From Trichoplax adhaerens (taxonomy: Eukaryota > Animalia > Placozoa), in assembly GCF_000150275.1 (NCBI RefSeq), contig NW_002060945.1, forward strand, positions 6,687,607-6,751,606: a stretch of DNA of 64,000 bases, read 5' to 3'. Position 1 is the stretch's first letter. Every line of letters begins with the position of its first letter. A model generated the notes under the pieces. The model worked only from the letters and a program-made list of their open reading frames with translations, searched no databases and was not told where the DNA came from. Position numbers and translations under genes: made by a program. Positions 5,380 to 47,908 of this stretch are shown piece after piece.

Positions 5380-7828
5380 CTAATTTATTGGCAAGATCAG
5401 TTTCATTGCCATCCATAGTAATAATCCATATAGGCAGAAGCAATCGTGTCGTAAACAACTGGAACAATTAGTATACCCTAAGCCGTTGGATAAATTAACC
5501 GTTTTTGCGCTAGAGTCAGGAAAAATTTCGCAATCCAAGATTGATCCAATGATAACTTTAATTGCTTCTGGTAAGCTATATTAAAATCCACATTAGAAAA
5601 CTATCACTACATAATCCATATTTAAATGAAATCATTAACTTATAATCCACTAAATTGATAAATTATATAATCCTCTTTCCTGCATATTAGAGACAAAAAG
5701 GCTAATTATATATAACTATAAAAGACTAAAGTTAGCCGATTATAATTATCAGGGTGAAATTACCGATATTCAATCTACAGTATTTAGCTCCATTCACTTG
5801 CCTAAGACATTAATCGTTCTCTCATTATTACTTCTACAATAGAATCTGTTTAGTAGTCTATATTACTTGTACTTTCTAATTTTCATTAATCTCGAGTATA
5901 ACGAAGAGCTGATAACTTGAACATGTTACTAACCACTACTGTACTGGCTTACTTATTGTGGTACGTAAATAGAAAAAAATGGATCCAATTTACAGAATAA
6001 ACCTTCAATACTTATAATCTTTCTTGTGCTATGCAGCAATTAGACTCATGCTTTTATGCAGTAAATATATTCAACCACTGAAGGATAAACTTACCAAGCT
6101 TTAGCTTTCCGACACTCTTGTTTGGTAATTGCACTTAGTAACATGGTCGAATCCGCACTACAGAAAGGAATTTCATGACAAGCTAATGATAAGATTCCCG
6201 TTGAACAGTCCTTACTCACTCTAGCAGTATTTAGAATTGATTTTAGAGACGCAATACTCTTCGACTGACGAAGCAGATTCGGTATCATCCATTCAGGGAA
6301 AGTCATATTAGCCGGTAGATCAGAACATTCATCAATACCAAATGAATTAAATGGCGGTTTGACACATCTCGCCAAAGTATAATTGCTCACGCTAACATTA
6401 CAATAACGATTCAACTGTATACCGCTATTGCGGCATTGATGAGAAAATTGACGACATTGTTTTATATTACCAATCATTATACTCTGTCTATCGCTGGAAC
6501 ATTTCGGCAGATTCGATTGGCATAGAATCTCCTTAAAATATCGGCTGCAGATGGAGTTTGAACCCAGTTGCTTTTCAATAACTACGTAATTGTCAATAAA
6601 TTGATCTAATTTCCTAGCATTTTTACTTAATAGAAAAGCCGGAACTGATGAATTGTCACGGCAAAAGTTTTGAATCTTTAGCGGCGGTTGACGACATGAG
6701 CTTAATTGATCCAACGAGTAAGCAATAACATCTTCAGAAATTGATGCTACTCTTTGTCTGCGACTAATTTTATTGAATATCTACCAATAGAAAAAAAACA
6801 TTCGATTATTAGAATAAGAGCATATCATAGGGTTGATAGAGTTCAAGTTATCGATGATTTGTCATCAGGTGATATACAAATTCATAACTACAAAAAAATA
6901 TTTAGATCTACAGCATGGCTTGGCTATTTGTATTCCGATTATGCAGTAACTGCTATTTGATTCAAAATTATCATACTTTTAAATGATATAACAAAAATCT
7001 TCTTGTATATCTACACGTAGTCGTAAGTAAACATGACCAACAATGGATTACCATATGTAATCTTATAGAGTTAAAGTCAAACCTGACAGGAATGTCGTAA
7101 ATTTATTTTTCTATAACTGCAAGCGATTAACGTTAAAGAAATCCATTCTTTACAAATTAGAATTTAATAGAATTATTAGAAATAGCATAACAGAGAGGTC
7201 AAGCTAATTATTCACTGCTCATTGAGTGCAAGTTAAAATGATTTTAAATGGACCATATTAATGTCACAGTATAGAAAAAAAATCGATTGGATTGTTAATT
7301 TCGTAACTTGATCTGAGAGTTCAATTTTCATCTACCACCTTAACTTACAGATAGTGTATCACATTTTAACGAGTATTTAAGTGCATTATCAATCACTATG
7401 TTAATTATACCACGATACTGCGTGAAATTCGCAGGATAAGATTTTCATACTGTAAGCTTCTCAGATTACAACTAGTTTATCAACAATTTTCTGAATGAAT
7501 TTTGTCTTTTAAAATATCGTGGTTATAGTCAATAGCCTTAATAGCTAGTCAGTAACTAGATATCAATAGAACGCTATAGATCCAATTTCCTGCTGAAAGA
7601 TTATAATTTTCTTCAGTTATTAGGGATGGAATGGATAGGGTCCCGCTTCAAAAACTATCTTCTACTTACTTGCTTCTTTGAGCCATGATAAGATTCCTCG
7701 TCGCGAGATGGGTCTTTACTATCGTCAAAATGATTGAATGGATCACTTCTAATATTGTTTTGACCATAATGGATATTTTGACATACACCAAAGCTAAGAA
7801 AATAAAGTAAAACTAAATTTGTTACCAT
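5380..7828 (-). CDS. Family copy A: secreted, GPI-anchor-like protein with two Frizzled-CRD-like cysteine-rich domains (346 aa, intact, divergent copy)
   Basis: Exons 7828-7670 (MVTNLVLLYFLSFGVCQ...SKKQ|gtaagt), 6780-6095 (IFNKISRRQR...KAKA-tg|gtaa) and 5575-5380 (c-LPEAIKVIIGSILDCEIFPD...LYGLLLWMAMKLILPIN*). Total 1041 nt, in frame. Confidence 0.85.
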
Positions 7829-10807
7829 CTTTAGATCGATTGTTACTTTGGACATTATGTAACAATCGCAAAGAAATAACTTCTATCGATTAATTTTTTT
7901 CTTCTTATAAAAACGTTGTCTTCCAATTTATCGTCAATTTCTTTGATGTGAGCGAAGATCAGGGCAAACAATAAAGGGAAAATGAGTAAGAAATTATAAA
8001 TGCTAAGCAAATATATGCTAAAAAATAGTTAAGGATGACTAAAGCTTGAGGTTGACATAATAAAATGACTCAAAGTAAAGCATAACTGACGACAAAATGA
8101 TATCATGCAGTAATTTGTATGCTGAATTATTGATAAAGATCTATTTTTTTTAAATTACTATCAGCTAAAGCCCACCTAAACTAATATTTAAGTTATTCCG
8201 TGACCACGTGAATTTTCCCAACTAATATTAATGGAGGCTTTCTAGTTATCTTTAATGTCAATAAGATAACACTAAGTAAATATCGTCCATTCACGTCATA
8301 CATGATTGTAAATTAAATAACGGAGTTTTTTATTCATTAATGCCTTTTTTCTTTATTATTTTATTTCTTATACTTTGATCACTATGCTTAAAACATGACT
8401 TTAAAATCATCTACAATGGTAGTATGAAATATAGGCAGAAATGTGTTATTTCAACGGCAATGATTCATTTACTTTATACAATTTCAAGCATTGTATCTTT
8501 ATTGGTGAAAAGAAATGATTCCGATAAAACTAAGAAATAAAAAAATTTTAAGAATGCCTAGAGATCGCAGTATTTATGGATTTATGTCTTAAAATCAACT
8601 GAAAGTATGCATTATTTAACTACGTATTTTACTTTATGTGAATTTAATTTGGCCAACATATTGCGTGGATTCTTCTCCGCTAATAAAGAATGCCGTCGAC
8701 TTATCCATTTATCATCTAGATCATAAAATGATTTGAGCTCTGTGGAGATCGGTTTAATTATTAAAATTGATAAATTTTGCATGTACAAACCACTCATTAA
8801 ATTATACTGGTCTGAAGTAAAACATTCTCCAGTGCTATTAACTACGTAAAAAATGGATTAAAAATGAAGAAGGGATAATTCAACCTACACTGCATTAATT
8901 CTTAATCTGTTGACATAAAATATTTACACCATTTGTTAATCTAATCTTACACCTACTCTTGACATTACTATAAAGTTATTTTTTACATTATGCCTCATCC
9001 GCATTCAAGAACGCTAACATTTAAAAGATTTTAATGTGACTCTTTATTGCCTACTACCCCGAGGAAATGGTTGGTTCATCGTGAAACTACTATATTCATA
9101 TTGGAACAATAGAATGGAATGAGTTATAAACGTTAATATCGCAGCTAGTAATCAATAAATAATATCATAATGCCTAAAAAATAAGCGGAAATCTTATTAG
9201 CTTTCTTTCAAAAGTGACTGGATTGAGATGAATACGATTGAATATAGTTATTCAGTAACAGTAGCATACAAACGCACTGTTAAATTAAGAGTACAACTGA
9301 TCCCATATGTATTAGTAGCGAGCACTCTAAACACTAATGTACGAATATTATGTTAAGAAGATAAAAAATTGGTTAACTAAAATTTATTAAAAAAGGAGTC
9401 GAAACGCTCTAATATTCCCCCCCCCTTAACACTTAAATTATATATGATGAAAATTGATTAACTAGCTTATATTACAACTGTAGTCGACTACATCATCTTC
9501 ATGGCTAGTATCGTATCGAAGCAGAGGCTGGATATCATTACTTGGATAAAACCAACGCTTTACTACTTAGCCAGTAATATCTCTTTCATTCTTAAATTAC
9601 TTAAAATTGACTATATACTATTAATTAGTTTGTTATTGACTGTATCGATGTATAGGTCACGATGCCATCTACAATAGATGAAATCGATCCTTATATTGAT
9701 ACATCGTACTTAATTTATGCCTTCTATATTTTCTACATTGAACCACTTATTCAATAATATTATGCAATATAGTTATACTGTAGCCTACACCAGGTTAAAG
9801 CAAAGGCTAGTGATAGCTATCTGACGACTGATATCTTCTCTTTTATTTTAAATTACCTAAATATTATCAATTTTAATTTATTAGCTGTAGCTATGGTCAT
9901 GCTTATACCTTCCAAAACGGATGAAATCACTTTTACCTAACCAATGTAACGCGTACTGGCATAAGTTGAAAGAAGCAGTGATAATAACAGCTTACAATAT
10001 TTCATCTACTGTACATTAGCAGTTCCATATTGAATCAGAAGACGGTTTTTGTGATCAATTCTCCACGTAAAACCTTAGAGTCAAACTCCAACTTATGATC
10101 TTTGCATATGTCCATATAACAATCTGTTGTACCGATTTATATTACAAAGCGATTACCAAATAAGAATTAACCCTACTCTATTTATGTAATTATCACATTC
10201 TATCCTTGGGCTAATCTATTACACAGATATATTATAAAAAATAAGATTGCTAAACATCTCGGCGTAATTATTATCATGCATAGGAATCTCGAGATTGCAT
10301 CTAAAAAGCTAAGTTTAATCTATCAATATCAAACCGCGATATGAATAATTAAGTAATTAAAAAAATCTTTCTTGATATACAAAAGATCTATTGTGAAAGG
10401 AAGTAGGTATGATATCATCATAAGATAGTTATCAGCTTAATATTGTAGCTTATTGGAGATTAAATTAAATCTTAATACACAAAATTGCAAATTATTCTAG
10501 GTTTTTATTCAATTTTCGCTGTTTTTAAATTCTTTAAAAGATCTTAACTAATCATTCCTATAAGATTATTAAATCATTAAAGAGTAAATTCCTAATATCA
10601 TCGCTGCTATTGGCACTTTGAACTAGGCACTTGATAGAATCTTTACATCAATTCTTGTATGGTAACAATTACCAGTACCGCATGCTATAATATCCATGTG
10701 CTAATTAATAATTACAAAATTTTCATTACTTTTCGTAGCATGGTATTCTCTAGCTCTCTAGGTTAGGTTATCACAGGTATATTATCATAAGAAATTATAT
10801 ATCTTCT

Positions 10808-12161
10808 TTAATTGAATATCTTAATGTAGGTAGCTAGCAAAAAACATGCTAAGTATGATGCTAAGTATGATAGAGTAGAGTCCATGGGGATTCCAACTGC
10901 AGCTCCATGAGATGCCGTCGTAGTACCTGTTAGAAGTGTGCATGTAGGCACAGTTATTCCAGCCGACCTATAAGCCTCTCCGGAAGGCGTGCACACTGTT
11001 GTGCTATTTGAATCAGGATACGCCGAGCAATTATAAATTATTCTATAGCTATTTTGAAGGCTACTTGGTAAACTGTAAATGAAAGTGCAAAATAAGAGTT
11101 AAAATAGAATGCAATCAAAGGAATATAATCAAAATTAGATGCTTAACTAATGACCTAGTTTGCATATTAATACAAAAATTTGAGATCTGTGAATAATGGA
11201 TGTACTGAGGGCTTACCAATTGATAGCATCTTGACATTGCTGTTTAGTTACAGCTGAAAGTACTGTAGTCCTATCGCTACTACAGGATGGAATAAGAACG
11301 CAAGCTATATTGGTCCATTTAGTTCCACAAGTGCTGGTAACTGCCGCGTTAGAGAAAGCTGTTTGCAGTGCAGAAATTGCCACTGCACGAGCAGCTAAGT
11401 TTTCCACTGAATAATAATATGGAAAAGTAATGTTTGCCGGTAGTGCTTCGCAATATTGAGAACTGAATGTTCCTGCTTTAAATTTAGAACATGTTCTTAA
11501 ACTAAATGTTTTTCCTGATTCATTGCAGTATTGTAAAAATGATTGGGGACCAAGGTTAGGAAAGTTACTACCGCAAGAGTTTAGTGCCGAACAAGCGCTT
11601 TGAAAATTTCCATTAGTAGCTGTTGAAGAATCTGCGGAACACTTGGGAAAAGCTCCTCCACAGAGAATGGTCTTTAATGCATTAGTGTAATTGCTACTTA
11701 ATGTGTGTTGCAAAAGAGAGAAGCTCAACTGAACCGCAGAAAATGTAGCACCAACAGTGTCAACATAATATGTTGGCGAGTTATAATCCGTGCCACAAAA
11801 TGATCTGACGGAACTGGGCAATCTTTTACATTCACCCAAATTACCGTTTACCCGACGACAGGTCGACTACTTCGGATTTGTCTAATATGCTCAACTGCCT
11901 AAATAGAGCATAGTCGATAAATTATACGTGTATAGATATTGCATACAGAATATTACTTTAAAATCGACACTGTAATATCTCATTGATACAAAAATGAACA
12001 AACGCATATTAAATTCGATATAGAATACTACCTACTCGCGACTTGAAATATTTTAAATACTCTACCTCCATAGCTAACTGTTCTTTATCTTTTAATGCTT
12101 CCCCTATGTTTGCCTTTATAGCCAAAAGGATAGCAAGTGTAGTTAACAAGAATTTCAACAT
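10808..12161 (-). pseudogene. Family copy B, frameshifted (probable pseudogene or sequence error)
   Basis: Exons 12161-12036, 11898-11217 and 11072-10808. Relative to copy C there is a 4-nt deletion near 11852 (gtc gct tgg ata becomes gtc gg gta), giving TAA at 11850-11848. A conserved Cys is also replaced (LSSNYTNAL versus LGSTCTNAL in C). Confidence 0.75.
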
Positions 12162-15100: not shown

Positions 15101-15325
15101 GAATGGTGACAATTATTGGTACTGTACGTATAATATCCTAGTGCCAATAAACTACTTTACAAAATTTTTATTACTTTTCCTAACATTGTATTCTCTAGCT
15201 TTCTAGATTAGGTTAGAACACGTATATTGACATAAGAAATTACATATATCTCCTTGCTAAAATACTCTAAATTATGTCATCTGTATAATACTGGTGCACG
15301 TAATTAGCCAGGCCTAATTCTTTCT

Positions 15326-16675
15326 TTAATTAAATATCTTAATGCAGGTGGCTAACAGAAAGGATGCTAAGTATAGCAAAGCAGAACCCATGGTCATTCC
15401 AGCTGCAGACCCTGTTTGGCCTTGAGTTGCCACGGTAGCAGCCACACCTGTTGGAAGTGTGCATGTAGACGCAGTTACTCCAGCCAACTTATAGGCCTCA
15501 CCGGGAGGCATACATACAGTTGCGCCGCTTGAATCAGGATAATTCGCACAATTATAGACTGAGCTCAGGCTATTTTGAAGGACACTTGGCAAGCTATGAA
15601 TGAAGATAAAAAGTAAGAGTTAAAAATAGACTGCAATCATAGGAATGTAGTTCAAAATTGATGTTATACACCTATTATATATATTAATAGAAAAATTCGA
15701 AATCTACGAATATTGGATGCACTCTGGGCTTACCAATTGATAGCAGCTTGACACTGTTGCCTAGTCACAGCAGTAAGTTGCTTAGATTTGTCGCTACTAC
15801 AGAATGGAGTCAAAACGCAAACCATATTAGTCCATTTAGCTCTACAACTATTGCTAACTCCCCCGGTAGAGAAAGTTGTTTGTAGCGCACTAATTGCTGC
15901 GCCTAGAGTAGCCATATTTTGCAGTAAATAATTTGGAAAAGTAATGTTTGCCGGTAATGCTCCACAATATTGAGAGTTCAACGTTGATCCACTAAATTTA
16001 GAACACGTTATCAAACTAAATGTTCTTCCCGATTGCTTACAGTATTGTGAAAATGATTGGCTACCAATGTTAGGGATGTTAATGACACCGCAAGAGCTTA
16101 GTGACGTACATGCGCTTTGAAAATTTCCAAAGGTAGCTGTTGAAGAATCAGAGGAACACCGGGGAAGAGCTCCTTGGCAGAGAATGGTCTTTAGTGCATT
16201 AGTACAAGTGCTACCTAATGTTTGTTGCAATAGAGAAAAGCTGGCCTGGAGTGTAGAAAATATAGGACCAATACTATTAACATAAGTGGCTGGTGAGTTA
16301 TAATCAGTGCCACAAAATGATCTGGCGGAACTGGGCAATCTTTTACATCCAGCAGAATTGCCGCTTATCCAAGCGACGATAGGTTGAGTACTTCGGATTT
16401 GTCTAATATGCTCAACTACCTAAATAGAGCATAATCGATGAATTACATTTATTAGTTAAAAATATAACTCTAAAATCGATACTGCACTATGTCATTGATG
16501 CAGAAATGAACAAACTTATATCAAATTAGATATAGAATAAGAGTATCTACTCGCGCTTAAAATATTCGAAATACTTCACATCCATAGCCAACTGTTTTTC
16601 GTCTTTCAATGCTTCTCCTCTATTTGTAGTTGTAGCCAAAAGGATAGCAAGTGTGAATAAGATCGATTTCAACAT
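15326..16675 (-). CDS. Family copy C; exons 2 and 3 intact, exon 1 one base short at the donor (possible pseudogene)
   Basis: Exons 16675-16551 (MLKSILFTLAILLATTTNRGEALKDEKQLAMDVKYFEYFKR), 16419-15734 (VVEHIRQIRSTQP...AAIN-tg) and 15593-15326 (c-LPSVLQ...SALLYLASFLLATCIKIFN*). All 16 core Cys are present. Exon 1 is 125 nt versus 126 nt in copy B. Confidence 0.7.
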
Positions 16676-17625: not shown

Positions 17626-17790
17626 TATATATATATATATGTTACGGCCATTCCTAAGAATGATTTTGTCCTTAAAATTGGTCACGGCCAATGCTAAGAC
17701 TGCGGCCATTCTTAGAAATAACAATCAAATGACCGGTCATTCCTAGGAATAATGGACCATTCCTAAGATTGGCCGGAAATTCTTATAAGA
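17626..17790. repeat. (TA)n tract followed by ~5-6 degenerate copies of CGGCCATTCCTAAGA
   Basis: Copies at 17645, 17685, 17703, 17734 and 17753, with a partial copy near 17771; spacing is irregular. Confidence 0.8.
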
Positions 17791-23152: not shown

Positions 23153-25196
23153 CTACTTTTTCACCACACTCGTATAATATATCATGCAGAAAGATGCTTT
23201 AGATAAAAAAGCTAAAAGAGAACAAATTACGTAAAATAGGAAAGATCCAAGGACAACTGTGGATGCATGGTTAGTATGTTTTTGGCTGGAGGGACCATTG
23301 ATTTGGCTAGGAGGAGCATTGGTTTGGCCACAAGGATTATAAACTGGCGCTTTTTGATCAGGAAACATATGGCAGTCAATAATGTCTCTGAAAGCTGCTT
23401 GAGAAGTGCTTGATAAACTAGACCAAGCAGAAATATGATCTTAGAGATGATGATTTGTCCGTTCGATTAGGTAAACAAAAATGAAAAATATACACTTTGC
23501 AGTATGAAAATTCTCTCTTCTTGATCGAACGTATTAATATTACTACTATAACGATTAGTTACTTACCAATTAACAGCAGAATTGCACTCTTGCCTACTTA
23601 CTGAACCAAGCAGTTTCTTTTTATGGCTGCTACAAAATGGCACTTTGTGACACAAGAGACTTATCCACTTATTAGTGCAGCTAGCTGAAACTCCACTGCT
23701 CTGTAAATCTGATACAGCCTTACTGATAGCAGAATCTTCATTCGGTAGATTAGGTATCAACCAAGTTGGAAAGGTAATATTGACAGGCAATGCTTGGCAA
23801 TAGAGCGAATTGAGCGAGCTCGCCTATATTTTGCACATGTTGTTAAACTGATAGTTTTTCCTGACATACGACATATCTGATTCTGCGATTGGCTGACTGA
23901 ATTTCTAATGCTGGCCGGACATGCACTAAGCTTACTGCAGCTACTAGCAAAGTTTGCATACGTAGCAGTAGAAGAATCACTAGAGCATCTCGGATAAACT
24001 CTATTACATATAAGGCTCTTTATAGCACTACTGCAGGTATTTCCTATTATCTCTTCTACACGAGAGAAAACGTTTGCTACAGCTTCTACAGATTTTTGGT
24101 TTCGTTTACTCATGATTGTTGGAGCATGATAGTTTATATCGCAAAAATTTCTGACAATCCCATTTGGTAAACTACATGAATTTATATTGCTTTCCACATA
24201 ACTCTTTGCAAAAGTTATTAAGCTCCTTCTGTCTCTAATTTCCTGCAAAAGCAATAAAATCTTATATCACATAAAAATTACCGTTATCAAAATCATCATG
24301 TAATAGAGCTGCATAGAAACGTTTCTCTTTTCTTCGTATAACCTACTTAAAGTTATGTACTGAATTGCCGCTGGAAATAAGTTTTGGTCAAAGCTAAGAA
24401 TACTGCAATCGCTTAAAGCATAAATTCAATCAACTGGTAAAGATCTGTTCTTTATGTCATAAATTAACTACGGTAATTTTCAAGCTTCATTTCTACATCG
24501 AATTTCTCAAGTGAATAAGGATTGCAGTACAATTCTCGCAGTAATATACGTGTTATAATCGTATGTAAGCAAGAAATTCTTCTTCCTATCGATATTTTAT
24601 ATATATTTACCAAACATCGACCGTGTATAACTAACTAGAACAGATTACAAAGTGTATCGGTTTATGGATTACCAATTCCTGATTAAAATGTATGTTTAGC
24701 ATTTTACATTTTTAAATACCTGAAAAGCATTTTAGAAGGGATAACTATTTACATAGCTAAGGATGCAATAATTTAAGCGTTGCTATACACTAAAAGAAAG
24801 ATTTACCCAAACAAGAAGATCTTCATAGTGAAACAATTATAAGAGTATACGTATATCCAAGAAAAAGTAATGGATGCTATCAATTGGATGTAATCATACA
24901 AACTACCGTTATTAGATCGACAAGGCAAAATTAAAAAATAAATTAATGAACTTAATCACCACACTCTTTCTATACAATAACAGTCAATATTCATGTAGAG
25001 CCCTCGTCAAATATCTTACTGTGATAGCAGCATTCTCTTCATCTTCCTTCTGCATATTGTGAATATCTTTAGCAATTAAACTCATGACATTATCTACCAA
25101 TTCATCATGTACTTTCATTACGCTCATGAATGGATGAAAGCCATCTGCATGATATAGGATAGAAAATATTATCAATACAGGACATTCCGCCTTCAT
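23153..25196 (-). pseudogene. Family copy D, single frameshift in exon 2 (probable pseudogene or sequence error)
   Basis: Exons 25196-25020, 24242-23567 and 23417-23153. A 1-nt deletion near 23821-23823 (agg cg agc tcg ctc aat) splits exon 2 into ORFs 23757-24254 and 23563-23790. Restoring the frame gives KYRxSSLNSLYCQALPVNITFPTW, matching copy E RYSMNSLNSFQCGTLPSNITFPTW. Confidence 0.8.
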
Positions 25197-26164: not shown

Positions 26165-26240
26165 CCAATTGTCCGAGAATAGGACAAAAAACCGAAAGTA
26201 AACCAATTGTCCGAGAATAGGACAAAAACCGAAAGTAAAC
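26165..26240. repeat. 38-bp tandem duplication (2 copies)
   Basis: ccaattgtccgagaataggacaaaaa(a)ccgaaagtaaa occurs twice, differing by one A. Confidence 0.95.
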
Positions 26241-27440: not shown

Positions 27441-28850
27441 GTTTATCGATTATTTGCTGTTAGCTTAGGTAGAAAGAGACAATCAATCCTATGTCAGATA
27501 GCGCAACGTATGCTATAATTTATATGCATATTGATCACACCATTATTTTGCCACATTACATTTTTTTCTACATAGAAATGTTAATGATTAATTACAAACA
27601 TTCATAATTATATTTGCTGTCAATGGAAAATATTTAAATTGTGAAACGAGATTAAGCAATGTCAGGAATACATGCCATTCATATTACGTACCATATGAAT
27701 TAGAACTGTAATAATGACGATAACGTAAGAAAAATTAAGTAAATTGGATATACAGCAACAGTATTAACTATTTTCCTGACAAGCCACATAGTTGGTTTGC
27801 GATTAAGCGTTTAAATTTATAGTAGGATATGAGCTAAGCGTGCGACAGATACTAGCAAAATTTGCATACGTAGTATTAGAAAATTTATTTGAGTATTTCG
27901 GGTAAGCTCCATTACATAAAAGGTACTCAACAGCATTGCTACAGGTAGTGTGCTTCCTATGATAGCTTGCGCGGTAGAAAAAGTACTCGCTACATATTCT
28001 ATAGATTTTTGATATCGTTTAGCCTTAATAGTTGGAGCACGGTAATTTTAACCGTAAAAATATCTGATCATAGTATTAGGTAAACTACATGTATTTAAAC
28101 TACTCTCCACATTTGCAAATGTCAATACTCTTCTTCTCTTTAATTTGTATGATAGTCATCATACGCGTATAGAATGGCTATATGATAACGATTTCTATTT
28201 TCTTCGCTTAATAAAGGGGAAACTATTCGATGACAGATAATATTCAAATTGTATATTTTCTCAAAATCTTGCAGTTTAATTATAACAGACTACCTCGACT
28301 AAGTTACCTATATTTTATGAAGAATAAGGCGATCATATAGGACACTATTTGATGACAGCTTATATTCAAGTTGCATATTTTCTCACATCCTTACAGTTAA
28401 AGTGGCATTTATGTAAAGCTGTAATAATTTAACAGCCATGAAATCATCTTGCTATAGAAGCTAAAAGAATGTAGGAAAATAGTCTTATAAAGAGGCTATT
28501 GGACATAGTAGTAGAACTAGGAAGAAGGGCTACGTATCATAAATGGATGAAGCAAAGTTTGTCGATAACTTCCTGTTAGCGTAGGTAATAAGAGATGATC
28601 AATCATATGTCGGATACCGTATCCTGTAATTTATATGCAGATTTAGTTTACATTTCCAATACAGAAACGTTAATAACTATAATTAATTGTAAATATTCAT
28701 AGTTGCGATTGCTGCAGACGGAAAGTGTTTAATTTGTGAGACTAGAATGGGTAAAGTTAAGAATAAATGTAGTTCACATTACACATCGTATAAATTAGAA
28801 CTGTGATAGCTATGGTAATGTAAGAAGAACTAAATTAGGAGCTTTGGTAT
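27441..28850. repeat. Diverged ~300 bp direct repeat (about 27441-27755 and 28557-28850) flanking the exon relic
   Basis: gtttatcgattatttgctgttagcttaggtagaaagagacaatcaatcctatgtcagata versus gtttgtcgataacttcctgttagcgtaggtaataagagatgatcaatcatatgtcggata, continuing collinearly to aattagaactgt. Confidence 0.75.
27755..28145 (-). pseudogene. Decayed relic of family exon 2 (first cysteine-rich domain), closest to copy D
   Basis: Minus strand reads KRRRVLTFANVESSLNTCSLPNTMIRYFYG*NYRAPTIKAKRYQKSIEYVASTFSTAQAIIGS/TCSNAVEYLLCNGAYPKYS..TYANFASIC, aligning with copy D RDRRSLITFAKSYVESNINSCSLPNGIVRNFCDINYHAPTI. It contains stops, frameshifts and Cys losses. Confidence 0.85.
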
Positions 28851-31166: not shown

Positions 31167-33095
31167 CTAAAAGAAAAGTGATAAAAGTGAACAAATTGCA
31201 TAAAATAGGAAAGATCCAACCACAACTGATGACGCATGATTAGTATATCCTTGATTTGGAGGCACTGCATAGGTTTGTCCATTTTGATCAGGAAAAATAC
31301 TGCATTCATAAAGTAGCTTGATAGCCGCTTGTACATTATTTGGCAAGCTAAACAAAAAAGAATATTATATATTTTGAGACAGTTAAATAGTCTCTTCCAC
31401 TTAATAAATATAAAAAGAAAAAATATGTATCACTGTATAAAAGCTTTCTAATGCAACATAATTACTGCTAATACTGTAATATATCATCACTTGCCATACT
31501 TACCAATTGATCGCAGCTTCACATTCTTGTCTGCTTATTACACCGAGAAGCTTTTTTGAATCACTGCTACAAAAGGGTACATTGCGGCATGAGATTCTAA
31601 CCCACCTATTAGTGCAGCTGGTTCCAATTCCAGCCCTACTTAAAGTATTTCTCAAGTTGGTAATAGCAACACTTTGACCTGGCAGCTCAGGTATCAACCA
31701 AGTTGGAAAAGTAATATTCGAAGGTAATGTTCCGCATTGAAACGAATTCAATGAATTCATGCTATATCTTCCACAGGAAGTTAAACTGATTTGTCTCCCT
31801 GATAAAGTACATATCTGAGTTCCTGTCTGTCCATTTAAACTGATAGTATTGGCGGGACATGAGCTAAGCCCGCTACACCCACTAGCAATACTTCCATATG
31901 TAGCGACAGTAGAATCACTTGAACATCTCGGGTATGCTCCTGTACATAAAATTTGCTTTACCGCACTACTGCAGGTACTTCCTAGCGTTACTTGTAAGGT
32001 AGAGAAAGAGTTTGCAATCAGCCCCATCGCTTTATCAAGTCTCTTGACCATAATTGTCGGAGAAGTATAACTCGTGCCACAAAAACTTCTGATACTACTG
32101 CTCGGCATAGAGCAAGAATTTAAATCGCTTTCCACATAGGCGACTGCAGTGACGTTTACGTTCCTTCTCTTCCTAATTTCCTGTAGAGTAACAATGTTAT
32201 ACATTATATGAAAGTGATCATATCGATAATGAGATAATATTCGTTTTTAAGGTATAAACGACTCAAAATCACATACTCCTATACGCGAATGGTGTATGTC
32301 ATTATTGCTGTGACTATTACAAGCGTTGCGAGGTTGATTTTAAACTAAAAATGTGCAATTGGCATCCTATTCGTAGAATAAGCATAACTACATGCACACA
32401 CATATGCGAATCAAGACATGTAACGATATGTACATTTGAACTGTTCGCACTAGGTCATTTAGTATAATTTATAAAACAATTTTTCTAATTTATTTTTGCG
32501 TTTTCCCTCGTACTTTTTGTATCCAAAATAACAAATCATAGAGAACTTTGGTATAAAATAGTCAAATGTAGTACTGACAAATAAATTATGGTTATAAAGT
32601 TATACTAAATCAAGAAAGCATAAATTATACAATAAATTAGCACGACTACTATCAACTCTTTCTTTAGCGATAGCCAGGAGCTAACCATATTACAGTATAT
32701 AGTTAGTCTCAGCAATAAAATCGATAACACGCATCCAACTACAACTATGTGTATCATGTTGATTGATTGGAGTGCAATGACTGATTGATCGATTGAGTTC
32801 AATAGTTTAGCTGTCAATAATGTAGTTTTAATGTTTAGCCAGAAAATTCACAATCCCTTAATATACGATTGTATAGATATACGTACAGTACACTCAAATT
32901 CCTTATTTAATATCTTACCGCAACGGCAACATAATTTTCATCGTCCTTTTGCACGTTCTTAGCATTATCAGCAATCAGCTTTACCACCTGATGTACTAAA
33001 TCATCCTGCGTTCTAAACACGCCTATAGGCGTGTTAAACCCGTTAACATGGCATAGGATGGAAAAGATAACCAAAGCAAAGCACGCTGACTTCAT
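31167..33095 (-). CDS. Family copy E: secreted, GPI-anchor-like double Frizzled-CRD-like protein (344 aa, intact)
   Basis: Exons 33095-32919, 32180-31504 and 31347-31167; 1035 nt in frame. Signal peptide MKSACFALVIFSILCHVNG, RKRR site, 2x8 Cys, and tail NHASSVVVGSFLFYAICSLLSLFF*. Confidence 0.92.
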
Positions 33096-34510
33096 TTTGA
33101 TCCAATTTAGAATGATTTAATTTCCTATTTAGAAATAACATTGACATTTTACATGACAATTTCAAAAAACTTTGTTAATAATACCCCAACAATTTAATCT
33201 CCAGAATAGCTAGCTAGAACATTGTTCTACCCATAGTATAAGTACGCGTCGTCTTTTTTGTCGATTTTTTTTTACAATTGGCTATTGAAAACAAAGATTA
33301 GTAGAAGTTTTTCTATTCATCTTTACACAAGAGTAGCATAGCATGAAGGGGAATAAAACTCCCAATGAAATCATTTGTCAGTAAACTACAAAGTACTGTA
33401 CAGTATATCATTACCCGTTATGACGATAATAAGTTGGATTTTTCCAATATGGAAAAGCGTCAAAAACTACCTTGACATTAATCGTACAATTTATAATAAT
33501 AATTCCTTTCACTATTTATAAAAGATATATATGATTAACTAATAATGCTGCTAGTACTGTAGTAATGGTAGTAATAAGGTTATCATTATTAGAAACAGCA
33601 CTGTCCATTAATACCTACTGCTCAATCAATATTTGATTTTACTACACCTTGCACTCAACTAACCCGTTACTTGTCTCTTTTTAGTATTAAAAATAACATG
33701 GAAAGTATTCCATCAACGATTTCGGGCGTAACAAAGACATACGGTAGCGTAGATTTATAGAGTACGTTAATGGTTGGTTATTCTTCATGTGTTCAAAAGT
33801 CATTCTCATCAATGGTACGATTGCGATAGACATTTGTATTGATTAAGTCGACCGGAATATCAAGGTTGATTTATCCTACTCTCACCCAACTCAATCAATA
33901 TATTGATTCTTGCCGATTTTTAGCTACTGTATATTTCCCCCAAATTCGCTATGCCTTGGCAATCTTCTCAATTCAACGTACTGTAGTAGACATATTTTTT
34001 CGATGCATACCGTAAGTGTTCAAAACGATTACACGATGTAGACTAAAAGAATGTGAAGTGCGCGTAGTGCTACCTACTGTAAACCTTCACCAAGAATTTG
34101 TATTGACAGACTCGATTGAAATAGAGAGAGAGCAACATTAGGACTAATGCAATAAGAGAAAGTTGATAGCATTACCACTTGCGTAGTTTTATATTGGTAC
34201 TTAATTAACAGAGAGCCGTCGAAAATTATTGTCACGCGATTCACCAACCAATTATTTCATTGTAAAAAAGAAAAATACCCTCGATACATACGGTGCAAAA
34301 CTTGCACTGTAGATGATTTCAGCTAGTGATTCATTTTACAAAAGTATAGAGTGATTTTGATCAAGTTAATTCTAATTGTAGCATCAGCTCCAAAGTATAG
34401 CATGCACTATCCAAAAGAAGACATTGTCACGGAAATTGAAAGTGGTTGATATTGATCGAGGACGGCGCCACACCTTGAAATAATGATCGTTGTCACTACA
34501 ATTCTCGACG

Positions 34511-35304
34511 CATATAAACAAGGACACAAAGGTGGGCAAATGGGAGAAGTGTATATGCTATTCGATGGTAGGCGATCACTTTAATGCCTTTTTTAACCAT
34601 CGAATCCATGCAATCTTTCGTCGATGGAAGTGGACCAATCGAATGTACATCAATAAATTTCGAAACATCGCAATACAGCTCAAGCCATGGTACGCGTGCT
34701 GTAGACGACATTACATTCTATCCCTTAGTCCAAACAATCGCCTTGAAGCTAAACCTTTCTAATTCAATTTCCACTAAGAAGATACAAAAGATTTCCTACT
34801 CACTGATGATATCTAGAAGCGATAAGATGATAGAAAGATCAAATTTGTTCCCTGATTGTCAAAACGCACCAACGTGCAAACACGATGATAATATCCTAGA
34901 TAGGAGTCATACAAACAAGGACACAAAGGTGGCAAATAGGAGAAGTGTATATGCTATTCGATGGTAGGCGATCACTTTAATGCCTTTTTTAACCATCGAA
35001 TCCATGCAATCTTTCGTCGATGGAAGTGGACCAATCGAATGTACATCAATAAATTTCGAAACATCGCAATACAGCTCAAGCCATGGTACGCGTGCTGTAG
35101 ACGACATTACATTCTATCCCTTAGTCCAAACAATCGCCTTGAAGCTAAACCTTTCTAATTCAATTTCCACTAAGAAGATACAAAATATTTCCTACTCACC
35201 GATGATATCTAGAAGCGGTAAGATGATAGAAAGACCAAATTTGTTCCCTGATTGTCAAAACGCACCAAACGTGCAAACACGATGATAATATCCTAGATAG
35301 GAGT
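34511..35304. repeat. Near-identical ~397-bp tandem duplication (34511-34907 and 34908-35304)
   Basis: The two copies differ at only a handful of positions; this explains the duplicated short ORFs in the ORF track. Confidence 0.97.
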
Positions 35305-35329
35305 CGCTGGCCTTGACCTCGCCCACTGA

Positions 35330-35760
35330 AACTGAGCCAATTAGAAACATTAGTCGTCGTTAAATCGATTACGCGTACTGTACAGTACGTGCTGACGTAA
35401 CCTGTGCCCATCTCCCTTCCATTACCACGTGATATCAACGGCTCGATGATTACTATAGAAAGCTTTGTTTTCAATCGCAACTCGGGGATAATGACCTCCG
35501 ACCTACCGTACTGTACAATACGTACCGGTACAGTACTACCAACTAGAGATAACTGGAGTGTACTGTACAGGACAGATTGTGTACTGTACCAATACGCTTC
35601 CTGGTCACAGTCACGTGCCATCAATCCACTATAATAATAGGATGCCAATCTTGGGCCGAGGTCGTGACGTCATTGGTGAGACAAACAGGAACTCGTTTTC
35701 AAAGTGACGCAACTACAGTACAGTACTGCACTGTACATCAATTCATACTGTAGACGTTGG
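35330..35760. promoter_or_regulatory. Promoter-like island: TACAGTA/TACTGTA cluster with CCAAT, CRE and E-box motifs
   Basis: Locally GC/CpG-richer. gccaat near 35336 and 35644, tgacgtaa at 35393, tgacgtca at 35665, cacgtg at 35426 and 35612, interleaved with tactgtacagtac runs like those upstream of HSD17B10 and SLD5. Confidence 0.45.
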
Positions 35761-35866
35761 TTCAATAGGGATAATGCAAGTAATTCGTTATTGTGTAAAA
35801 ACAACTCTAGGGTGACTACTGGATTACCATCACTGTCCATCAGGGAGGAATCAGTTATGAACGAAT

Positions 35867-36113
35867 GCATGGAAAAGGATTCAGATTAAATAGAGATCAT
35901 TTTATCGAATAGTTTGAGTCAACAATTGAAGAGTGCAGACAGGTTCTTGTCGGGGGGCCTACTATTATTTTTACTGGACGTTTCTCACGCATGGAAAAGG
36001 ATTCAGATAAATAGACAGTACGTCATTTCAATGAATAGTTTCAGTCAAGAATGCAAGAATGCAGACATGTTCTGGTCGGGGGCCTACTATTATTTTCAAT
36101 GGACGTTTCTCAC
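35867..36113. repeat. ~122-bp tandem duplication (2 diverged copies)
   Basis: gcatggaaaaggattcagat...gtcggggg(g)cctactattatttt...ggacgtttctcacg occurs twice. Confidence 0.9.
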
Positions 36114-36885
36114 GGTACAGTAGTCCCTAACTCAGTACAGTGCTTGGTGCCACGATAAGCAGATTATGAATCAAACTTCTGCTTCATACATTGTTACTCA
36201 AATGGAGAAAAATTGCTGTAACACTTTCCCTCCCTTAATTTGACTCATGAGCGTGGATTAAAGTACTGTATCTTTGCAACTCAACCTTGAACCGAATATT
36301 CAGACTTTCATCGCCAAATTCCATTAAGATTCGATTCAGAAAGTACAGTACTGTACGTATACTGTATGCCGTAGACTGTAGGAGCGATTACAGCAAGGGC
36401 TGATGTTCTTCTAAAGTGCAATTGTAGGCCTATCTTAAACCAGTGTTAATTTCGGAATGACAGAGTAATCCCTGCAGTACTGTACATACAGTAGTGGGTT
36501 AGTATACAAGAAGTCACATCGAACTTTTTCAATAAATAAATGTACTAATAGAACTATCGACTCGTAATTGAAATTGAACACACGTAAACATTTCTAGCAT
36601 ACATACACTACTGTACAGTACTGTACTATGCATTAGATAAAGTGTAGATAAGCCGGATGGAATGTACAATAACAACTTAATCGATCTTTTTGTCATTATT
36701 TACAGTCAATACCCAATTAAAGAAGTTGTAGCATTGTGCAGCAACCGACTTACAGGAAACGAAAGATCAAAACAAGTTGATCATTTTTCAATCGATTTTA
36801 TTCTCATTAAACCGTCTAAAATCCGTAATAATATAAAATTTATCTAAAATCCTAAAAGGTACTGTTATGCATTCTTAAAACAGAT

Positions 36886-37152
36886 CTTGGTTGTAGGCTA
36901 GACTATAAAACAGCTAAGTATCAAATTACCGTTGCAGAGATACATGTTGGCAGTCTTCTACTTACTAAAGTGAAATTTCAAGAAAAATCAAAACTCTTCC
37001 TATGTCCATTTTAAGATACTTGGTTGTAAGCTAGACTATAAAACAGCTATGTATCAAATTACCGTTGCAGAGATATATGCTGGCAGTCTCCCACTTACTA
37101 AAGTGAAGTTTCAAGAAAAATCAAAACTCTTCCTATGTCCAATTTAAGGTAC
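36886..37152. repeat. 133-bp tandem duplication just downstream of copy F
   Basis: cttggttgta(g/a)gctagactataaaacagcta...aaaactcttcctatgtcca starts at 36886 and again at 37019. Confidence 0.95.
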
Positions 37153-37333
37153 TTACAGTATGTCACAAGCATCTAGCAATATGATATAAACACTTGCAGC
37201 AAATACTGTAGTAGAGTATAGTAATTAGAATCATAAGGGTATTGCTTTCAAAACTTACTGTCGATACCCACTAGCTCTAATATAATGGTAACTAATCAGT
37301 CATATAAAATTTTTTTTATGCATATTCCAGAAT

Positions 37334-38821
37334 TTAATTTATGAAAAAGATTGACATGAGAATGCAAAATAAGTAAAGCAAGATTGATTCAATAGCTACC
37401 GCAGTACCACCACCACTATATGCTTGATCTGGGGGTAAGGTTACACTTGCCGAAGTTTGATCAGGATAAACAGTACAGTCAAGGAGACTCGATCCTTGAA
37501 AACTACTTGGCAAGCTGAAATTATATTTTTATTCCAAATAAATTAAATGTCACAAGGTAAATCGAATATTTTCAATTGACTAGTGGTTTATTCAAAACTT
37601 CTTAGGTAATACTTTAGGATGGCTATGTTTATGTACAGTATATCCATACATACTGTAAACAGCGTGCAGTAGGTATCATAACCACTTACCAGTTGAAAGC
37701 TGCTTGGCATTGTTGTCGCGTTACAGCACTATAAAGTTTCTTTCGGTCGCTACTGCAAAATGGAGTATTAACACACAAAAGTTTCATCCACCTATCTACG
37801 CAACTTTTTTTTACGTTAGCTTTTTCCAATTGTGTTTTTGACGCAGCAATAGAAAGAGTTTTTCGCTGTATATCTGTAGTCAAATAACCTGGAAATACGA
37901 TATTCGTTGGTAAACTACCACAAATTTGTGAATTAATCGTTCCTGGAGAGTACTTTTGACATTGTGTTAACTGGATTTTTGTTCCTGCTCTAGCACATAT
38001 CTGTGGCCCAGTCTGGCCTTCAATATTAATGAGATTAGATGAGCACGCTGTCATGCCAGCACATGAACTAGCAAAAGTACCGTACGTGGCAGTGCTCCCG
38101 TTAACAGAACACTGTGGTATAAATCCTTTACACATTATTTCTTTGACGATATTGGCGCAATTACTTCCAAATTGCGATTGTATGTTGGAGAAGCGATCTA
38201 TGACAAATTCTAGTACTTTAGTCAGTCTCCTAACCAGCATCGTTGGACTGTTATAACTGATATTGCAAAATATTCCAATCTTGCTGCTTGGCAGAGAACA
38301 CGAATTTAAATCGCTATCGAGCCATGCTTTAACTGTGTTACTTGTAGCCCTTATTTTCCTGATGTGCTATAAAATAGAAAAAAAATAAATTGGTAAGTAT
38401 CGTTCTGATTCAAACCCTGCAAATGTTGGTAGGTTACAAGTATTCAATAACTCTTGCAACGACAATGTACAAATTCGGTTGATCATTTTAACTGGTAAAC
38501 TGTGCTATACCGCATATTATGCTAAGCACGATTCTGTTACTATTTTGCTAACAAGACATTGTCGAACAGTATCTACATACAGGGAACATTTCCATGTAAT
38601 AGCCTTCATAATTTCTGTACATGTAACTTCATAAATGCTGAACTTACATTGATTTCCGCCTTAATTGAATCATCCACGATTTCTTTGCTACCTTTTGCAG
38701 CTGCTTCTACCAACTTCCTTAAGAAATCGTCATCTTCGCTGAACGCAGCAATATGAGAATGAGCTTGATCAATTTTGCAAGTAACCAGAAGCAATCCAAG
38801 GACAATTAGTGTAAATCTCAT
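37334..38821 (-). CDS. Family copy F: secreted, GPI-anchor-like double Frizzled-CRD-like protein (343 aa, intact)
   Basis: Exons 38821-38648 (MRFTLIVLGLLLVTCKIDQAHS...AEIN|gtaagt), 38366-37690 (HIRKIRATSN...AAFN-tg) and 37514-37334 (c-LPSSFQGSSLLDCTVYPD...SGGGTAVAIESILLYLFCILMSIFFIN*). Total 1032 nt, in frame. Confidence 0.92.
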
Positions 38822-44800: not shown

Positions 44801-45157
44801 CTACTAATTACCTGTATTCACGACCTTTCATAACCCTTATTGCATGTATCTATTCGATCTTATCATTTTGTGCAATATCAAAATAAAAGTATAAATTTTA
44901 TTCATATTTTAGGCTATACAATAATGTGTACAAAACTCGATAAAGAAAGCTTATTACCTTATCGCTTCACTATAGTAGCGACAATATCTAGTGTCCTCAA
45001 GTGTATCAGCCTTAAAAATAAGCCTTATAATAAATAGTACTAATGAACATCTGACTAAAGATTTAATTATTTTACTGCTGTATTCTTATATTTAAGTATA
45101 ATACTAATCGAATTATCATAAAAAGTGGCAATTCTTTCGTTATACAATAGATAGGAA

Positions 45158-47908
45158 ATGGCTAAACGGAACCTATTGATCATCGTCATCGCTCTTATTG
45201 GATGTAGCGTTAATGGTCTTCAGAATAATTATCAGCGGGAAATTAATAATTCTCATGAATTGCTTAAACATCTGGTGAACTATTTAGCCGAGCTTAAAGG
45301 AGTGAATTTGGTTGAACGATCTGAGTACTTACACCACATAGTAAGAATACGTACATCATTTATGCTTCCATGCAATAATCAATTTACTTTTTCAACGAGG
45401 ATCGTAGATTAATTAATTCCATTAACAATCGACAATGAATAAAACTAATGATGAAAAATATTGGGAACTGATGAAAGGACAAGTAAATTTAACCTTAGTA
45501 GAATGTTCTTGTGATAGTATTACCATAATGTATGATTTTGAGTGAATTAATTTAAGTGATGTATTCGTGAGATTAACACCGATTCATTTTTCTCTCTTAT
45601 CAATAATAACCGCAAAAACGGATATAACTATTCTTCAAGCTCCTTATCTATAGTAGATAAAACTTGATATGATTATAATCTAGCGTTACTTCAATAATTT
45701 AATTTTTAGATAAAATAACCATAAAGAATACAACATTTTTAAGAGAACAATCCACTACTACTTCTGACATTTATCGCCTATCCAATTCAATATTACATAA
45801 GCTAATTACTTTCTGTGCATGTTAATAGCAAACACTTTCGCACTAATATCACTTAGCTCTCAAAAATTTTGTACAGAAAAAATCCCCCTCCTTATGCATT
45901 GTTAGTATTCACGATGAAGTACGTTGCATTTAATGTTAAAATGAATATACTCAGTGAGATATTATTCAGTAATTACTGTTACTTTACAAAAAGTTATCCA
46001 ATGCTTTTTTCCTGTTTCGGCATTTCGTATATGAATCTTCGTGTTTAGCCTCTAGAATTTTGATTTAAAACTTTATAAAGTACTTTTATAAAGCATCACA
46101 ACTATCGCTATATTCTTATACTATAAAGCCTTAATAGGAAATCTTAAGCAGATTTTTACCTAAAGTCTAACTGTATTATGATATTATCAATGTAAATACT
46201 AAATCATTTGGATCACTAGTTAAATTAGTTAAGAAAAAGTGTCACTTGAAATTATATTCAATCAATAGTAATCGGAATTTAGTGCAATAAAGCTAATTTC
46301 TATTTAATGAAATTTTATCATCATGCCGCTATTTCATTGCTCTTACTATACCTTACACGATGCCAAAGAAATATCAGATATTAAATCATTTACTTCATTC
46401 AGCTAATTCGTATACCGATGCATTCATTTAAGATACAGTTTGGTCGAACATAGACAAGTTATCGCTTATTATTAGTTTACTTATACTTTGGTACTGAAGT
46501 ATTTCTTGAAAAATTGAATACTTCCATTTTCATTTACTACTATCAAGTGATGTAAAACTTTCATGTTTACTATAGATATCTAGTCAATTAATGCTAGATT
46601 GTTTATATCGATTACAAATACCAGTAGAATGTTATTCTTTACTTTATAAGGAAACACTGCCAATTCTCTTTCTTCAAAGCAGACGGCGTTATGTAATCTA
46701 ATATATCATATAGTATCCTATTTTAATTTTCTATAATAGTCTATTCGTAACTATTAACTATTATAACATATATATGACTGATCAGCGCGATAGAATTTAT
46801 AAAATCAGATATTATGACGTTGATAGCTGCAGTTCTAGTAAAACTCATGCTAGCGTATAAAATAATTAAAATTGCTGTTACTTTAAAATAATTACATGTA
46901 TCTTATTTTGTATCCAGAAACAGAGAGAAATACAGAGTACACCATCTAAAATATGGCTTGATGGTAGCCTAACTTCATGCGTGAATGTTGGTGTAAACAT
47001 TTCTTCATTTTGTAATATTAATTACAAAGTGCCAGAATATTTAGTGAAAACCTTAACTCTAACCTTGGAATTCGTAGCAAAAAGTTATGAAGTATTAAGG
47101 CCTCGGTTACATACCGACTGTTTCGCAGCAATAAGAGAAATTGTATGTAAAGGAACTTTGCCAAAATGTTCTCACGATGGAACAGCCACCTATCTGAATT
47201 TTAGCAGTTCTTGTTCACACTTGAATTCGACATGCTTACCAAATATCATACACATTAATGGTCAATCTGGAAGTACATTATGCAGTGAAGCAGGCAAGCA
47301 ATATACACTAAACGCTTGTCGCAAACCTAAGCTAACAGCAATTAATAAGGACCACTGTAGTCCTTTTAGTAATGAAATTACTTACCCAACATGGTTAATG
47401 GCCAGTTTAGCAATTCAGGAGGCGACTGTTAAAAATACAAAAACTTCCTTTGAAAGGCGAAATGTTTCTACCGATTGCATTAATAAGTGGGTAAAATTTA
47501 CATGCAATAGAATTCCATTTTGTAGTCTTGATCAGACAAGTTTACACGTTGGTGTTAGCAAGCAACAATGTGAAGAAGCGTTGACATGGTTAGTATTTTT
47601 ACTTACTTTCAGTTGAATTCCATCAAAAATTAATTAACGGACTGGCATTTCCGTTTAAATATAATAAGAGCAGGGACTAATTAGTACTCTTATATTTGAT
47701 AATTATTTTCATTTATTGCTATTAATCGATATCTTTATATTTTCTTAGTTTACCACCAAGTATGGCAGCAACAAGAAGAGCCGGAATGGATTGTAACAGT
47801 TTTCCCGATAGCAACAATGCAGTGGTAGTTAGTAGCAGTTACTCTATATTAGCAATTAATTACATTAACCTATTTTTGGCCTATCTATTTACTTTATTGC
47901 TATTTTAA
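45158..47908 (+). CDS. Family copy G (inverted orientation): secreted, GPI-anchor-like double Frizzled-CRD-like protein (337 aa, intact)
   Basis: Exons 45158-45340 (MAKRNLLIIVIALIGCSVNG...HHI|gtaaga), 46918-47588 (KQREIQSTPSKIWLDGSLTSC...EALT-tg|gttagt) and 47749-47908 (t-LPPSMAATRRAGMDCNSFPD...LFLAYLFTLLLF*). Total 1014 nt, in frame. Confidence 0.9.

Follow-up and report, generated by a model that had tools for sequence, protein, structure and literature searches.

A tandem cluster in the placozoan Trichoplax adhaerens of genes for putative surface-tethered proteins with two divergent Frizzled-type cysteine-rich domains

The window analysed here is a stretch of 64,000 nucleotides of Trichoplax adhaerens (RefSeq assembly GCF_000150275.1, contig NW_002060945.1, positions 6,687,607 to 6,751,606 of the forward strand), with a GC content of about 0.31. 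Between window positions 5380 and 47908, it holds a tandem array of paralogous three-exon genes for secretory proteins built around two cysteine-rich domains (CRDs) akin to those of Frizzled proteins, which are the lipid-gripping modules of Wnt and Hedgehog signalling. In our reading, which we regard as probable, the locus is a tandem cluster of an unnamed animal family that has expanded in placozoans and is older than them, and whose members would act as surface-tethered double-CRD binding modules. The array is composed as follows, the position of the large exon in tblastn being given last for each full copy.

Array: 5380-47908; six full copies on the minus strand, one on the plus strand (G) and one fragment, from the open reading frame (ORF) listing and tblastn
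Copy A: 5380..7855, minus strand; exon 1 7855-7670, exon 2 6780-6095, exon 3 5575-5380; 6.1-6.8 kb
Copy B: 10808..12161, minus strand; exon 1 12161-12036, exon 2 11866-11217, exon 3 11072-10808; 11.2-11.9 kb
Copy C: 15326..16675, minus strand; exon 1 16675-16580, exon 2 16419-15734, exon 3 15593-15326; 15.7-16.4 kb
Copy D: 23153..25196, minus strand; exon 1 25196-25020, exon 2 24242-23567, exon 3 23417-23153 (extended end); 23.6-24.3 kb
Relic: 27776..28146, minus strand; fragment with CRD1 only, in two reading frames, with a stop inside each of its two pieces
Copy E: 31167..33095, minus strand; exon 1 33095-32919, exon 2 32180-31504, exon 3 31347-31167; 31.5-32.2 kb
Copy F: 37334..38821, minus strand; exon 1 38821-38648, exon 2 38366-37690, exon 3 37514-37334; 37.7-38.4 kb
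Copy G: 45158..47908, plus strand (the sole such copy); exon 1 45158-45340, exon 2 46918-47588, exon 3 47749-47908; 46.9-47.6 kb

An earlier note on this DNA had described seven three-exon paralogs plus a relic, and this is borne out by tblastn, by the ORFs and by the splice boundaries, with copy D frameshifted and copy B using non-homologous splice sites. Indeed, tblastn against the window found seven full copies of a large exon of about 225 codons plus one fragment, with pairwise E values from 1e-16 to 1e-85, and the stop codons of copies A and G fall exactly at 5380 and 47908. In all seven models, exon 1 carries an ATG and a hydrophobic signal sequence, exon 2 carries both CRDs, and exon 3, whose first base completes a split Cys codon ahead of L-P, supplies the last two Cys, the stalk, the hydrophobic end and the stop. 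Every exon boundary of the seven full copies reads AG/GT, the introns are canonical GT..AG, and a phase-2 intron lies inside a Cys codon (TG/GT) in all window copies. The coding length is divisible by 3 in A, B, C, E, F and G (337-355 aa) and is not in D.

Copies A (355 aa), C (349 aa), E (344 aa), F (343 aa) and G (337 aa) have open models, A being the most divergent member of the array. Several of them have close counterparts among database proteins: P0004 matches exon 2 of copy A at 100% identity, P0002 does so for exons 1 and 2 of copy F, P0003 shares 98.7-100% identity with copy G, and the counterpart of copy E, P0001 (TrispH2_002105 of Trichoplax sp. H2), has 97% identity to it. The 346-aa frame of copy B is open only with a donor and an acceptor that are not homologous to those of copy C, relative to which it shows a frame shift between the IRQIR segment and Cys1, and a Tyr stands at its scaffold Cys3. 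A related model, P0010, spans a frame shift of the same type by a mini-intron and retains Cys3. Copy B is possibly decaying. Exon 2 of copy D is one base short, with a -1 frameshift near 23790-23830 and two overlapping ORFs in different frames, and a related database model (P0020) sidesteps the break by leaving out CRD1; judged by its reading frames, copy D would be either a pseudogene or the source of a truncated single-CRD product. The relic has neither exon 1 nor exon 3.

Among the seven copies, transcription was examined for copy E, from contigs of sequencing runs. The RNA contigs of three runs, all from one study, skip exactly 31348-31503 and ~32180-32918, both of which are GT..AG segments on the minus strand, and the intron bins show little or no depth in these runs. 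In a fourth run, which is probably DNA, the exons and both introns are evenly covered without joints. Since the RNA contigs skip precisely the modelled GT..AG introns, the three-exon model of copy E is real and transcribed, and spliced transcripts, whose absence from all copies would have spoken against the earlier note, do exist. An array of dead genes was also considered and is rejected, given the spliced RNA of copy E and the six open frames.

The protein as a whole is described on P0001, the counterpart of copy E; P0001 and P0002-P0004 served for whole-protein analyses, and the window copies were searched exon by exon. Its parts are the following.

Signal peptide: N-terminus
Pro-region: residues 32-67, two helices predicted with modest confidence
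Basic site: RKRR
First eight-Cys domain: residues 81-183
Second eight-Cys domain: residues 195-300
Stalk: about 20 residues
C-terminal end: hydrophobic run of 22 residues up to the last residue

The sixteen Cys form two repeats of C-x10-12-C-x35-39-C-x8-C-x5-6-C-x15-C-x5-C-x14-15-C, and the layout proposed at first, namely a signal peptide, a pro-region, two eight-Cys CRDs, a stalk and a hydrophobic end with no tail behind it, agrees with the sequence. The RxxR site that had been attributed to the family occurs in five copies, as RRQR in A, RQIR in C, RDRR in D, RKRR in E and RKIR in F, and sponge relatives carry basic sites at the same position (RGRR, RFKR, RSKR). A furin-like cleavage of the pro-region is predicted from these motifs. 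At the other end, uncharged hydrophobic runs of 12-25 residues lie at most 4 residues from the C-terminus in B, C, E, F, G and many relatives, and small-residue triplets precede such runs in these five copies, in the sponge Dysidea and in other relatives; the C-terminus of copy A fits less well. These features were assessed by a crude home-made rule (an uncharged run near the C-terminus plus small-residue triplets), and by this rule they resemble the signal for anchoring by glycosylphosphatidylinositol (GPI).

The kinship of the two domains was approached through sequence profiles. Pfam Fz is the sole Pfam family matched by any copy, with E values from 1e-7 to 6e-4 on the seven full-length exon-2 copies and 0.012 on the second fragment of copy D (75 residues), and copy C, at 32.8 bits, lies above the curated cut-off of 32.1. 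The same family is matched by 25 of 39 non-placozoan relatives. Furthermore, a profile of 73 family sequences run against all PDB sequences matched 49 chains, every one of them a Frizzled, Smoothened, Ror or sFRP CRD, with FZD3 as the best match (E 1.1e-5). In the FZD3 alignment, Fz C1-C5, C7 and C8 each have a counterpart among the family Cys, and none stands opposite Fz C6. The spacing alone suggests that the eighth Cys corresponds to Fz C9 and that C10 has been lost. According to sequence and model together, both domains are divergent Frizzled-type CRDs, about 15% identical to those of Frizzled proteins, in a reduced eight-Cys form that would lack the C6-C10 disulfide.

The predicted fold leads in the same direction. 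The AlphaFold model of the whole protein, made with the family alignment, has a predicted local distance difference test score (pLDDT) of 82.6 and a predicted template modelling score of 0.73, with residues 70-320 above 90 in pLDDT, and its two CRDs pack into a single compact two-lobed unit. When compared with 48,161 chains by VIA-align, the whole model has Fz-type CRDs at all of places 1-12 (Z 4.3-6.2), the best being Smo (Z 6.2, root-mean-square deviation 3.2 Å over 106 residues) and MuSK (Z 6.1), followed among others by ROR2 (5.6), FZD4 (5.5), Sizzled (5.3) and sFRP3 (4.6). Most of these top chains match CRD2 and sFRP3 matches CRD1; the N-terminal domain of NPC1 ranks below the Fz-type CRDs (Z 3.6). 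With CRD1 modelled alone (pLDDT 93.4), the 11 best chains are again all Fz-type CRDs, at Z 3.9-5.7 over about 100 of 115 residues, led by Ror2/Nrk (Z 5.7 over 101 of 115 residues), ROR2 (5.5) and sFRP3 (4.9), and unrelated rows reach at most 3.7. In Foldseek, Fz-type CRDs rank first and predominate for the whole model; for CRD1, where the list is short and weak, they account for half of it. Hence, Pfam Fz, the PDB-sequence profile search and the comparison of predicted folds, in which Fz-type CRDs come first for the whole model and for CRD1 under VIA-align, all uphold the Frizzled-CRD kinship that the earlier note had claimed for both domains.

Among 1.84 billion representatives searched, 86 matched the family. 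About 45 of the 86 group apart from the placozoan sequences; these relatives start with a signal peptide, have both CRDs collinear, and terminate either with a hydrophobic stretch or with a W immediately following Cys14. Among them are a 339-aa protein of the demosponge Dysidea avara (XP_065883359.1), whose stalk is of the Ser/Thr/Pro kind and whose end is GPI-like, a transcript of the homoscleromorph sponge Oscarella pearsei coding for a transmembrane segment and a short tail, and a collinear homolog in the octocoral Xenia sp. (XP_046857538.1), all three annotated as uncharacterised. In hhalign, the placozoan profile aligns with the non-placozoan group over 200 collinear columns (probability 99.7%, E 1e-26), with the Dysidea protein over 221 columns reaching into the exon-3 C-(L/I)-P...C motif (96.7%, E 4e-10) and with the Xenia protein over 188 columns (91.8%, E 7e-7). 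The non-placozoan sequences had been chosen by the placozoan profile, and the comparison is to this extent not fully independent, but the scores lie far beyond such a bias. Moreover, the genomic ORF P0056 of Dysidea has W as its last residue, at the place of a Cys in the mRNA-based model P0113, a pattern that implies the same TG/GT phase-2 intron as in the window copies. Motifs besides the Cys are also kept across phyla, such as P-x-C, which follows Cys4, and T-x-W at the start of CRD2. When the non-placozoan alignment and the Dysidea protein were used as queries in word-indexed searches, few further relatives came to light. Five relatives of the sponge-type subgroup (P0096-P0100) lie on one 150-kb ENA contig, which implies that tandem arrays of the family exist outside placozoans too.

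The collinear homologs in a demosponge, a homoscleromorph sponge and an octocoral refute the lineage-specific origin put forward at first. The earlier note had recognised no described animal family with this architecture, and searches of named families and of the literature found none either; literature searches on the accessions and on GPI-anchored Fz-CRD proteins of placozoans and sponges found no description of a double-CRD architecture. By homology, the array belongs to an unnamed family of a known domain, common to at least three early-branching animal phyla.

The sponge relatives also bear on another explanation, in which the proteins are structural or adhesive components of a surface coat and the disulfide-rich domains would be stable spacers only, binding no specific small ligand. 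It is in keeping with the mucin-like stalks of P0113 and P0063, long and rich in Ser/Thr/Pro, that separate the CRDs from the anchor, with the good representation of copy E in the RNA contigs and with the fact that no ligand has found support so far. However, all characterised branches of the fold superfamily use the domain to bind a ligand, and the two CRDs are conserved as a unit in at least three phyla, the motifs outside the Cys included, which argues for a conserved surface rather than a spacer. We consider a coat function very unlikely and, for the present array, retain the reading of a tethered binding module.

Within Trichoplax, the genome (105.6 Mb in 1,414 contigs) was searched with the family profile, and 30 matches were obtained, representing about 26 loci on at least nine scaffolds. 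Besides the window, which accounts for about one third of these loci, there are clusters on contigs C1404 (5 loci), C1409 (5), C1393 (2) and C1408 (2), and single loci on four further contigs. The window paralogs are 30-66% identical as proteins with the Cys scaffold kept, except for Cys3 of B, in agreement with the strong divergence between the Cys that the earlier note had seen. In a maximum likelihood tree, one clade unites B, C, D, E and F with sequences absent from the present genome, G joins the clusters of C1404 and C1393, and A lies outside a clade of 31; several window copies pair with sequences absent from the Trichoplax genome, at 53-57% identity. At the DNA level, an alignment survives only for B and C (79% over 1.3 kb). 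The tree and this self-comparison show that the array is old and mixed, not monophyletic, and they reject a single recent burst of local duplication. The ratio of non-synonymous to synonymous substitutions (dN/dS, Nei-Gojobori) is 0.53 for B-C and about 0.39 for D-E, and older pairs are saturated. Between copy E and the strain of the RNA runs, 10 codon changes are non-synonymous and 4 synonymous. When copy E is compared with scaffold C1099, which is probably an unmerged haplotig of the interval from E to F, the proportion of non-synonymous differences (pN 0.011) exceeds that of synonymous ones (pS 0.007). These few changes in copy E fit either relaxed constraint or diversifying selection. A rapidly turning-over repertoire had been proposed; the fast divergence of the proteins stands, but the turnover of genes was overstated, because most copies are old, with B/C the only recent pair, and the array is not monophyletic.

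The same data have to be weighed for a diversified recognition repertoire, directed at microbes, food algae or self versus non-self, in which change would be driven by the targets. It would be consistent with tandem arrays containing decayed members (D, the relic and possibly B), with the excess of non-synonymous changes in copy E against both the RNA strain and the haplotig, with a paralog dN/dS of 0.4-0.5 while all Cys are kept, and with a second organism having five paralogs on one 150-kb contig. The counts are small, however, and equally fit relaxed constraint; the one-to-one pairing with sequences absent from the genome indicates that gene content may be fairly stable, B/C is the only duplication recent enough to align as DNA, and the fold is not used by any known immune or allorecognition family. 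We therefore hold a recognition repertoire to be distinctly unlikely and keep to a family of tethered binding modules.

The surroundings of the array can be described briefly. As had been stated, the array sits between two conserved genes.

Left flank: 186-2394, minus strand; short-chain dehydrogenase (adh_short, E 6.5e-17)
Right flank: 52002-52488, plus strand; GINS subunit Sld5 (E 4e-9)

Two tandem duplications occur in the window. One, at 34511-35305 between E and F, consists of 2.0 copies of a 396-bp unit, 97% identical, within a GC-richer island at 34-36 kb (GC up to 0.40), and ORFs across it gave no Pfam match; the other, at 49648-50286 between copy G and Sld5, consists of 2.0 copies of a 320-bp unit, 93% identical. 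The 7-kb scaffold C1099 (1-7089) is collinear with window 30978-37809 at 92.6-100% identity over the aligned blocks, with several indels, all blocks being at least 97% identical except one short block of 190 bp, and the 396-bp unit, doubled in the window, stands in it once. At window position 31046, about 58 extra bases are present in the RNA contigs (runs X6, X9 and X12) and in C1099, an allelic indel in the 3' untranslated region of copy E. Beyond Sld5, two single-exon minus-strand ORFs (53934-55070, 378 aa, and 58341-59396, 351 aa) show numerous hydrophobic segments and no Pfam match; the two are distantly paralogous, sharing 23% identity over 105 residues (E 9e-7). An Rfam scan of the window found no RNA family.

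Together, the gene models, the protein anatomy and the predicted fold can be ordered into a mechanism. The secretory protein would be made with a signal peptide and a helical pro-region of about 40 residues, usually ended by RxxR or RR, which a furin-like convertase would remove, and the mature double CRD would be held on the outer face of the plasma membrane via a GPI anchor. Frizzled and sFRP bind the lipid of Wnt, Smoothened and NPC1 bind sterols, and folate receptors bind a small ligand. By analogy with these members of the fold superfamily, the double CRD may bind a hydrophobic or lipid-modified ligand. Because there is no cytoplasmic part, its role would be that of a capture, decoy or co-receptor module rather than a signalling receptor, and the paralogs may differ in specificity, the Cys scaffold being conserved and the remainder diverged.

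Several observations weigh against this reading or parts of it. The copies other than C score 17-28 bits against Fz, below the curated cut-off, and with eight Cys per domain the canonical ten-Cys, five-disulfide pattern is absent. Structural similarity is moderate (Z 4-6), and the E values that Foldseek gives are weak (whole model 0.2, CRD1 alone 1.5), with none at or below 0.001. The RxxR site does not hold for the whole array, as it is missing from G and reduced to RR in B. A tail-less C-terminal transmembrane anchor would look like a GPI signal, and the Oscarella relative has a true transmembrane segment with a short cytoplasmic tail in place of the GPI-like end. Finally, expression is demonstrated for copy E only, and no support for any ligand was obtained.

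As to the ligand, the genome carries three Wnt genes (L029, L030 and L031, on C1402 and C1414). A complex prediction that paired residues 70-320 of P0001 with a Trichoplax Wnt's last exon scored 0.02, the Wnt fold itself being uncertain in it, so that the result speaks neither for nor against binding. In L029, the acylated-serine motif is CHGTSTAC, where CHGxSGSC is usual, and the last exon of L031 showed no motif of this kind. Pang et al. 2010 reported that Trichoplax is without any known secreted Wnt antagonist and considered unrecognised ones possible (PMC2959043). The proteins could then be membrane-tethered Wnt binders, decoys or co-receptors which replace the sFRP, Dkk and WIF antagonists and hold the palmitoleate in the CRD groove. 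Such a role would accord with the Fz type of both domains, with the best structural matches of CRD1 being the Wnt-binding modules of Ror2/Nrk and ROR2, with the absence of the known antagonists (PMC2959043) and with the modulation of Wnt by other GPI-anchored proteins, RECK and the glypicans. On the other hand, three Wnt genes face about 26 double-CRD loci that are 20-60% identical, a diversity beyond the need of three ligands; the C6-C10 disulfide is absent and identity to Frizzled CRDs is about 15%, and many domains of the Fz fold (Smo, NPC1, folate receptor) do not bind Wnt. Wnt binding is a possibility that we consider unlikely, and the broader reading of a tethered module for hydrophobic or lipid-modified ligands is preferred.

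In a more speculative proposal, the family would be an ancient, pre-bilaterian group of membrane-tethered binders for lipid-modified morphogens, some of which would regulate the range of Wnt in placozoans as the missing extracellular factors, the expanded rest having moved to other lipids. We think it improbable. The family bears on the earliest use of Frizzled-type CRDs in animals, as a compact unnamed architecture is common to placozoans, sponges and a cnidarian and counts about 26 genes in an animal that has three Wnts and in which no Wnt antagonist is known. Should some members bind Wnt, a recognised gap in the regulation of Wnt in early animals would be filled; should they bind other lipids or sterols, this would be an early non-Wnt use of the Frizzled-CRD fold. 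The proteins are small, disulfide-stabilised and easily expressed, and these possibilities are directly testable.

The array proteins can be set beside several known systems. Mid1 and FAM155 (NALF) share a distant Fz-like CRD; FAM155A appears among the weak Foldseek matches of CRD1 (E 5.2 and 9.9), and one sponge relative touches Pfam Mid1 (E 1.3e-3). However, these matches are far weaker than the Fz ones and are absent from the top 50 rows of VIA-align, and FAM155 is a channel subunit with transmembrane helices. Membership of Mid1/FAM155 is rejected, the window copies having no profile match to it.

RECK, the glypicans and the folate receptors resemble the array proteins in having a cysteine-rich ligand-binding ectodomain on a GPI anchor, the anchor being a prediction in the array proteins. 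All three are GPI-anchored; RECK and the glypicans act as modulators of Wnt, and the folate receptor serves to capture a small ligand. RECK has been linked to WNT7 (PMC6338448). They differ from the array proteins in domain number, size and Cys pattern. Folate-receptor clusters came up as weak neighbours in Atlas feature searches, with scores of 0.79-0.81 that, being below 0.9, are leads only; the folate receptor has one globular domain of sixteen Cys, whereas the sixteen Cys of the array proteins come from an internal duplication of two eight-Cys units. Membership of the folate receptor, glypican or RECK families is rejected, no copy having a profile match to them.

Corin also has two Fz-type CRDs in one chain. 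It is a large type II transmembrane serine protease in which LDLR repeats separate the two, whereas the CRDs of the array proteins are adjacent and make up nearly the whole protein. Corin is listed among Fz-CRD proteins (PMC6386478). With the CRDs of Frizzled, Smoothened, ROR1/2 and MuSK, the array proteins share the fold and the spacing of Cys 1-5, 7 and 8. In those proteins, the CRD is the ectodomain of a seven-transmembrane receptor or of a receptor tyrosine kinase; the array proteins have no signalling part, and their 337-355 aa include one hydrophobic stretch only, which lies at the very C-terminus. The sFRP proteins and Sizzled are alike in being secretory and in carrying a Frizzled-type CRD without a seven-transmembrane part, and the CRDs of sFRP3 and Sizzled are among the best structural matches. 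An sFRP is soluble, with one ten-Cys CRD along with an NTR (netrin-like) domain, for which Pfam gave no match in any copy or relative, whereas the array proteins have two eight-Cys CRDs, a pro-region and a hydrophobic end predicted to anchor them.

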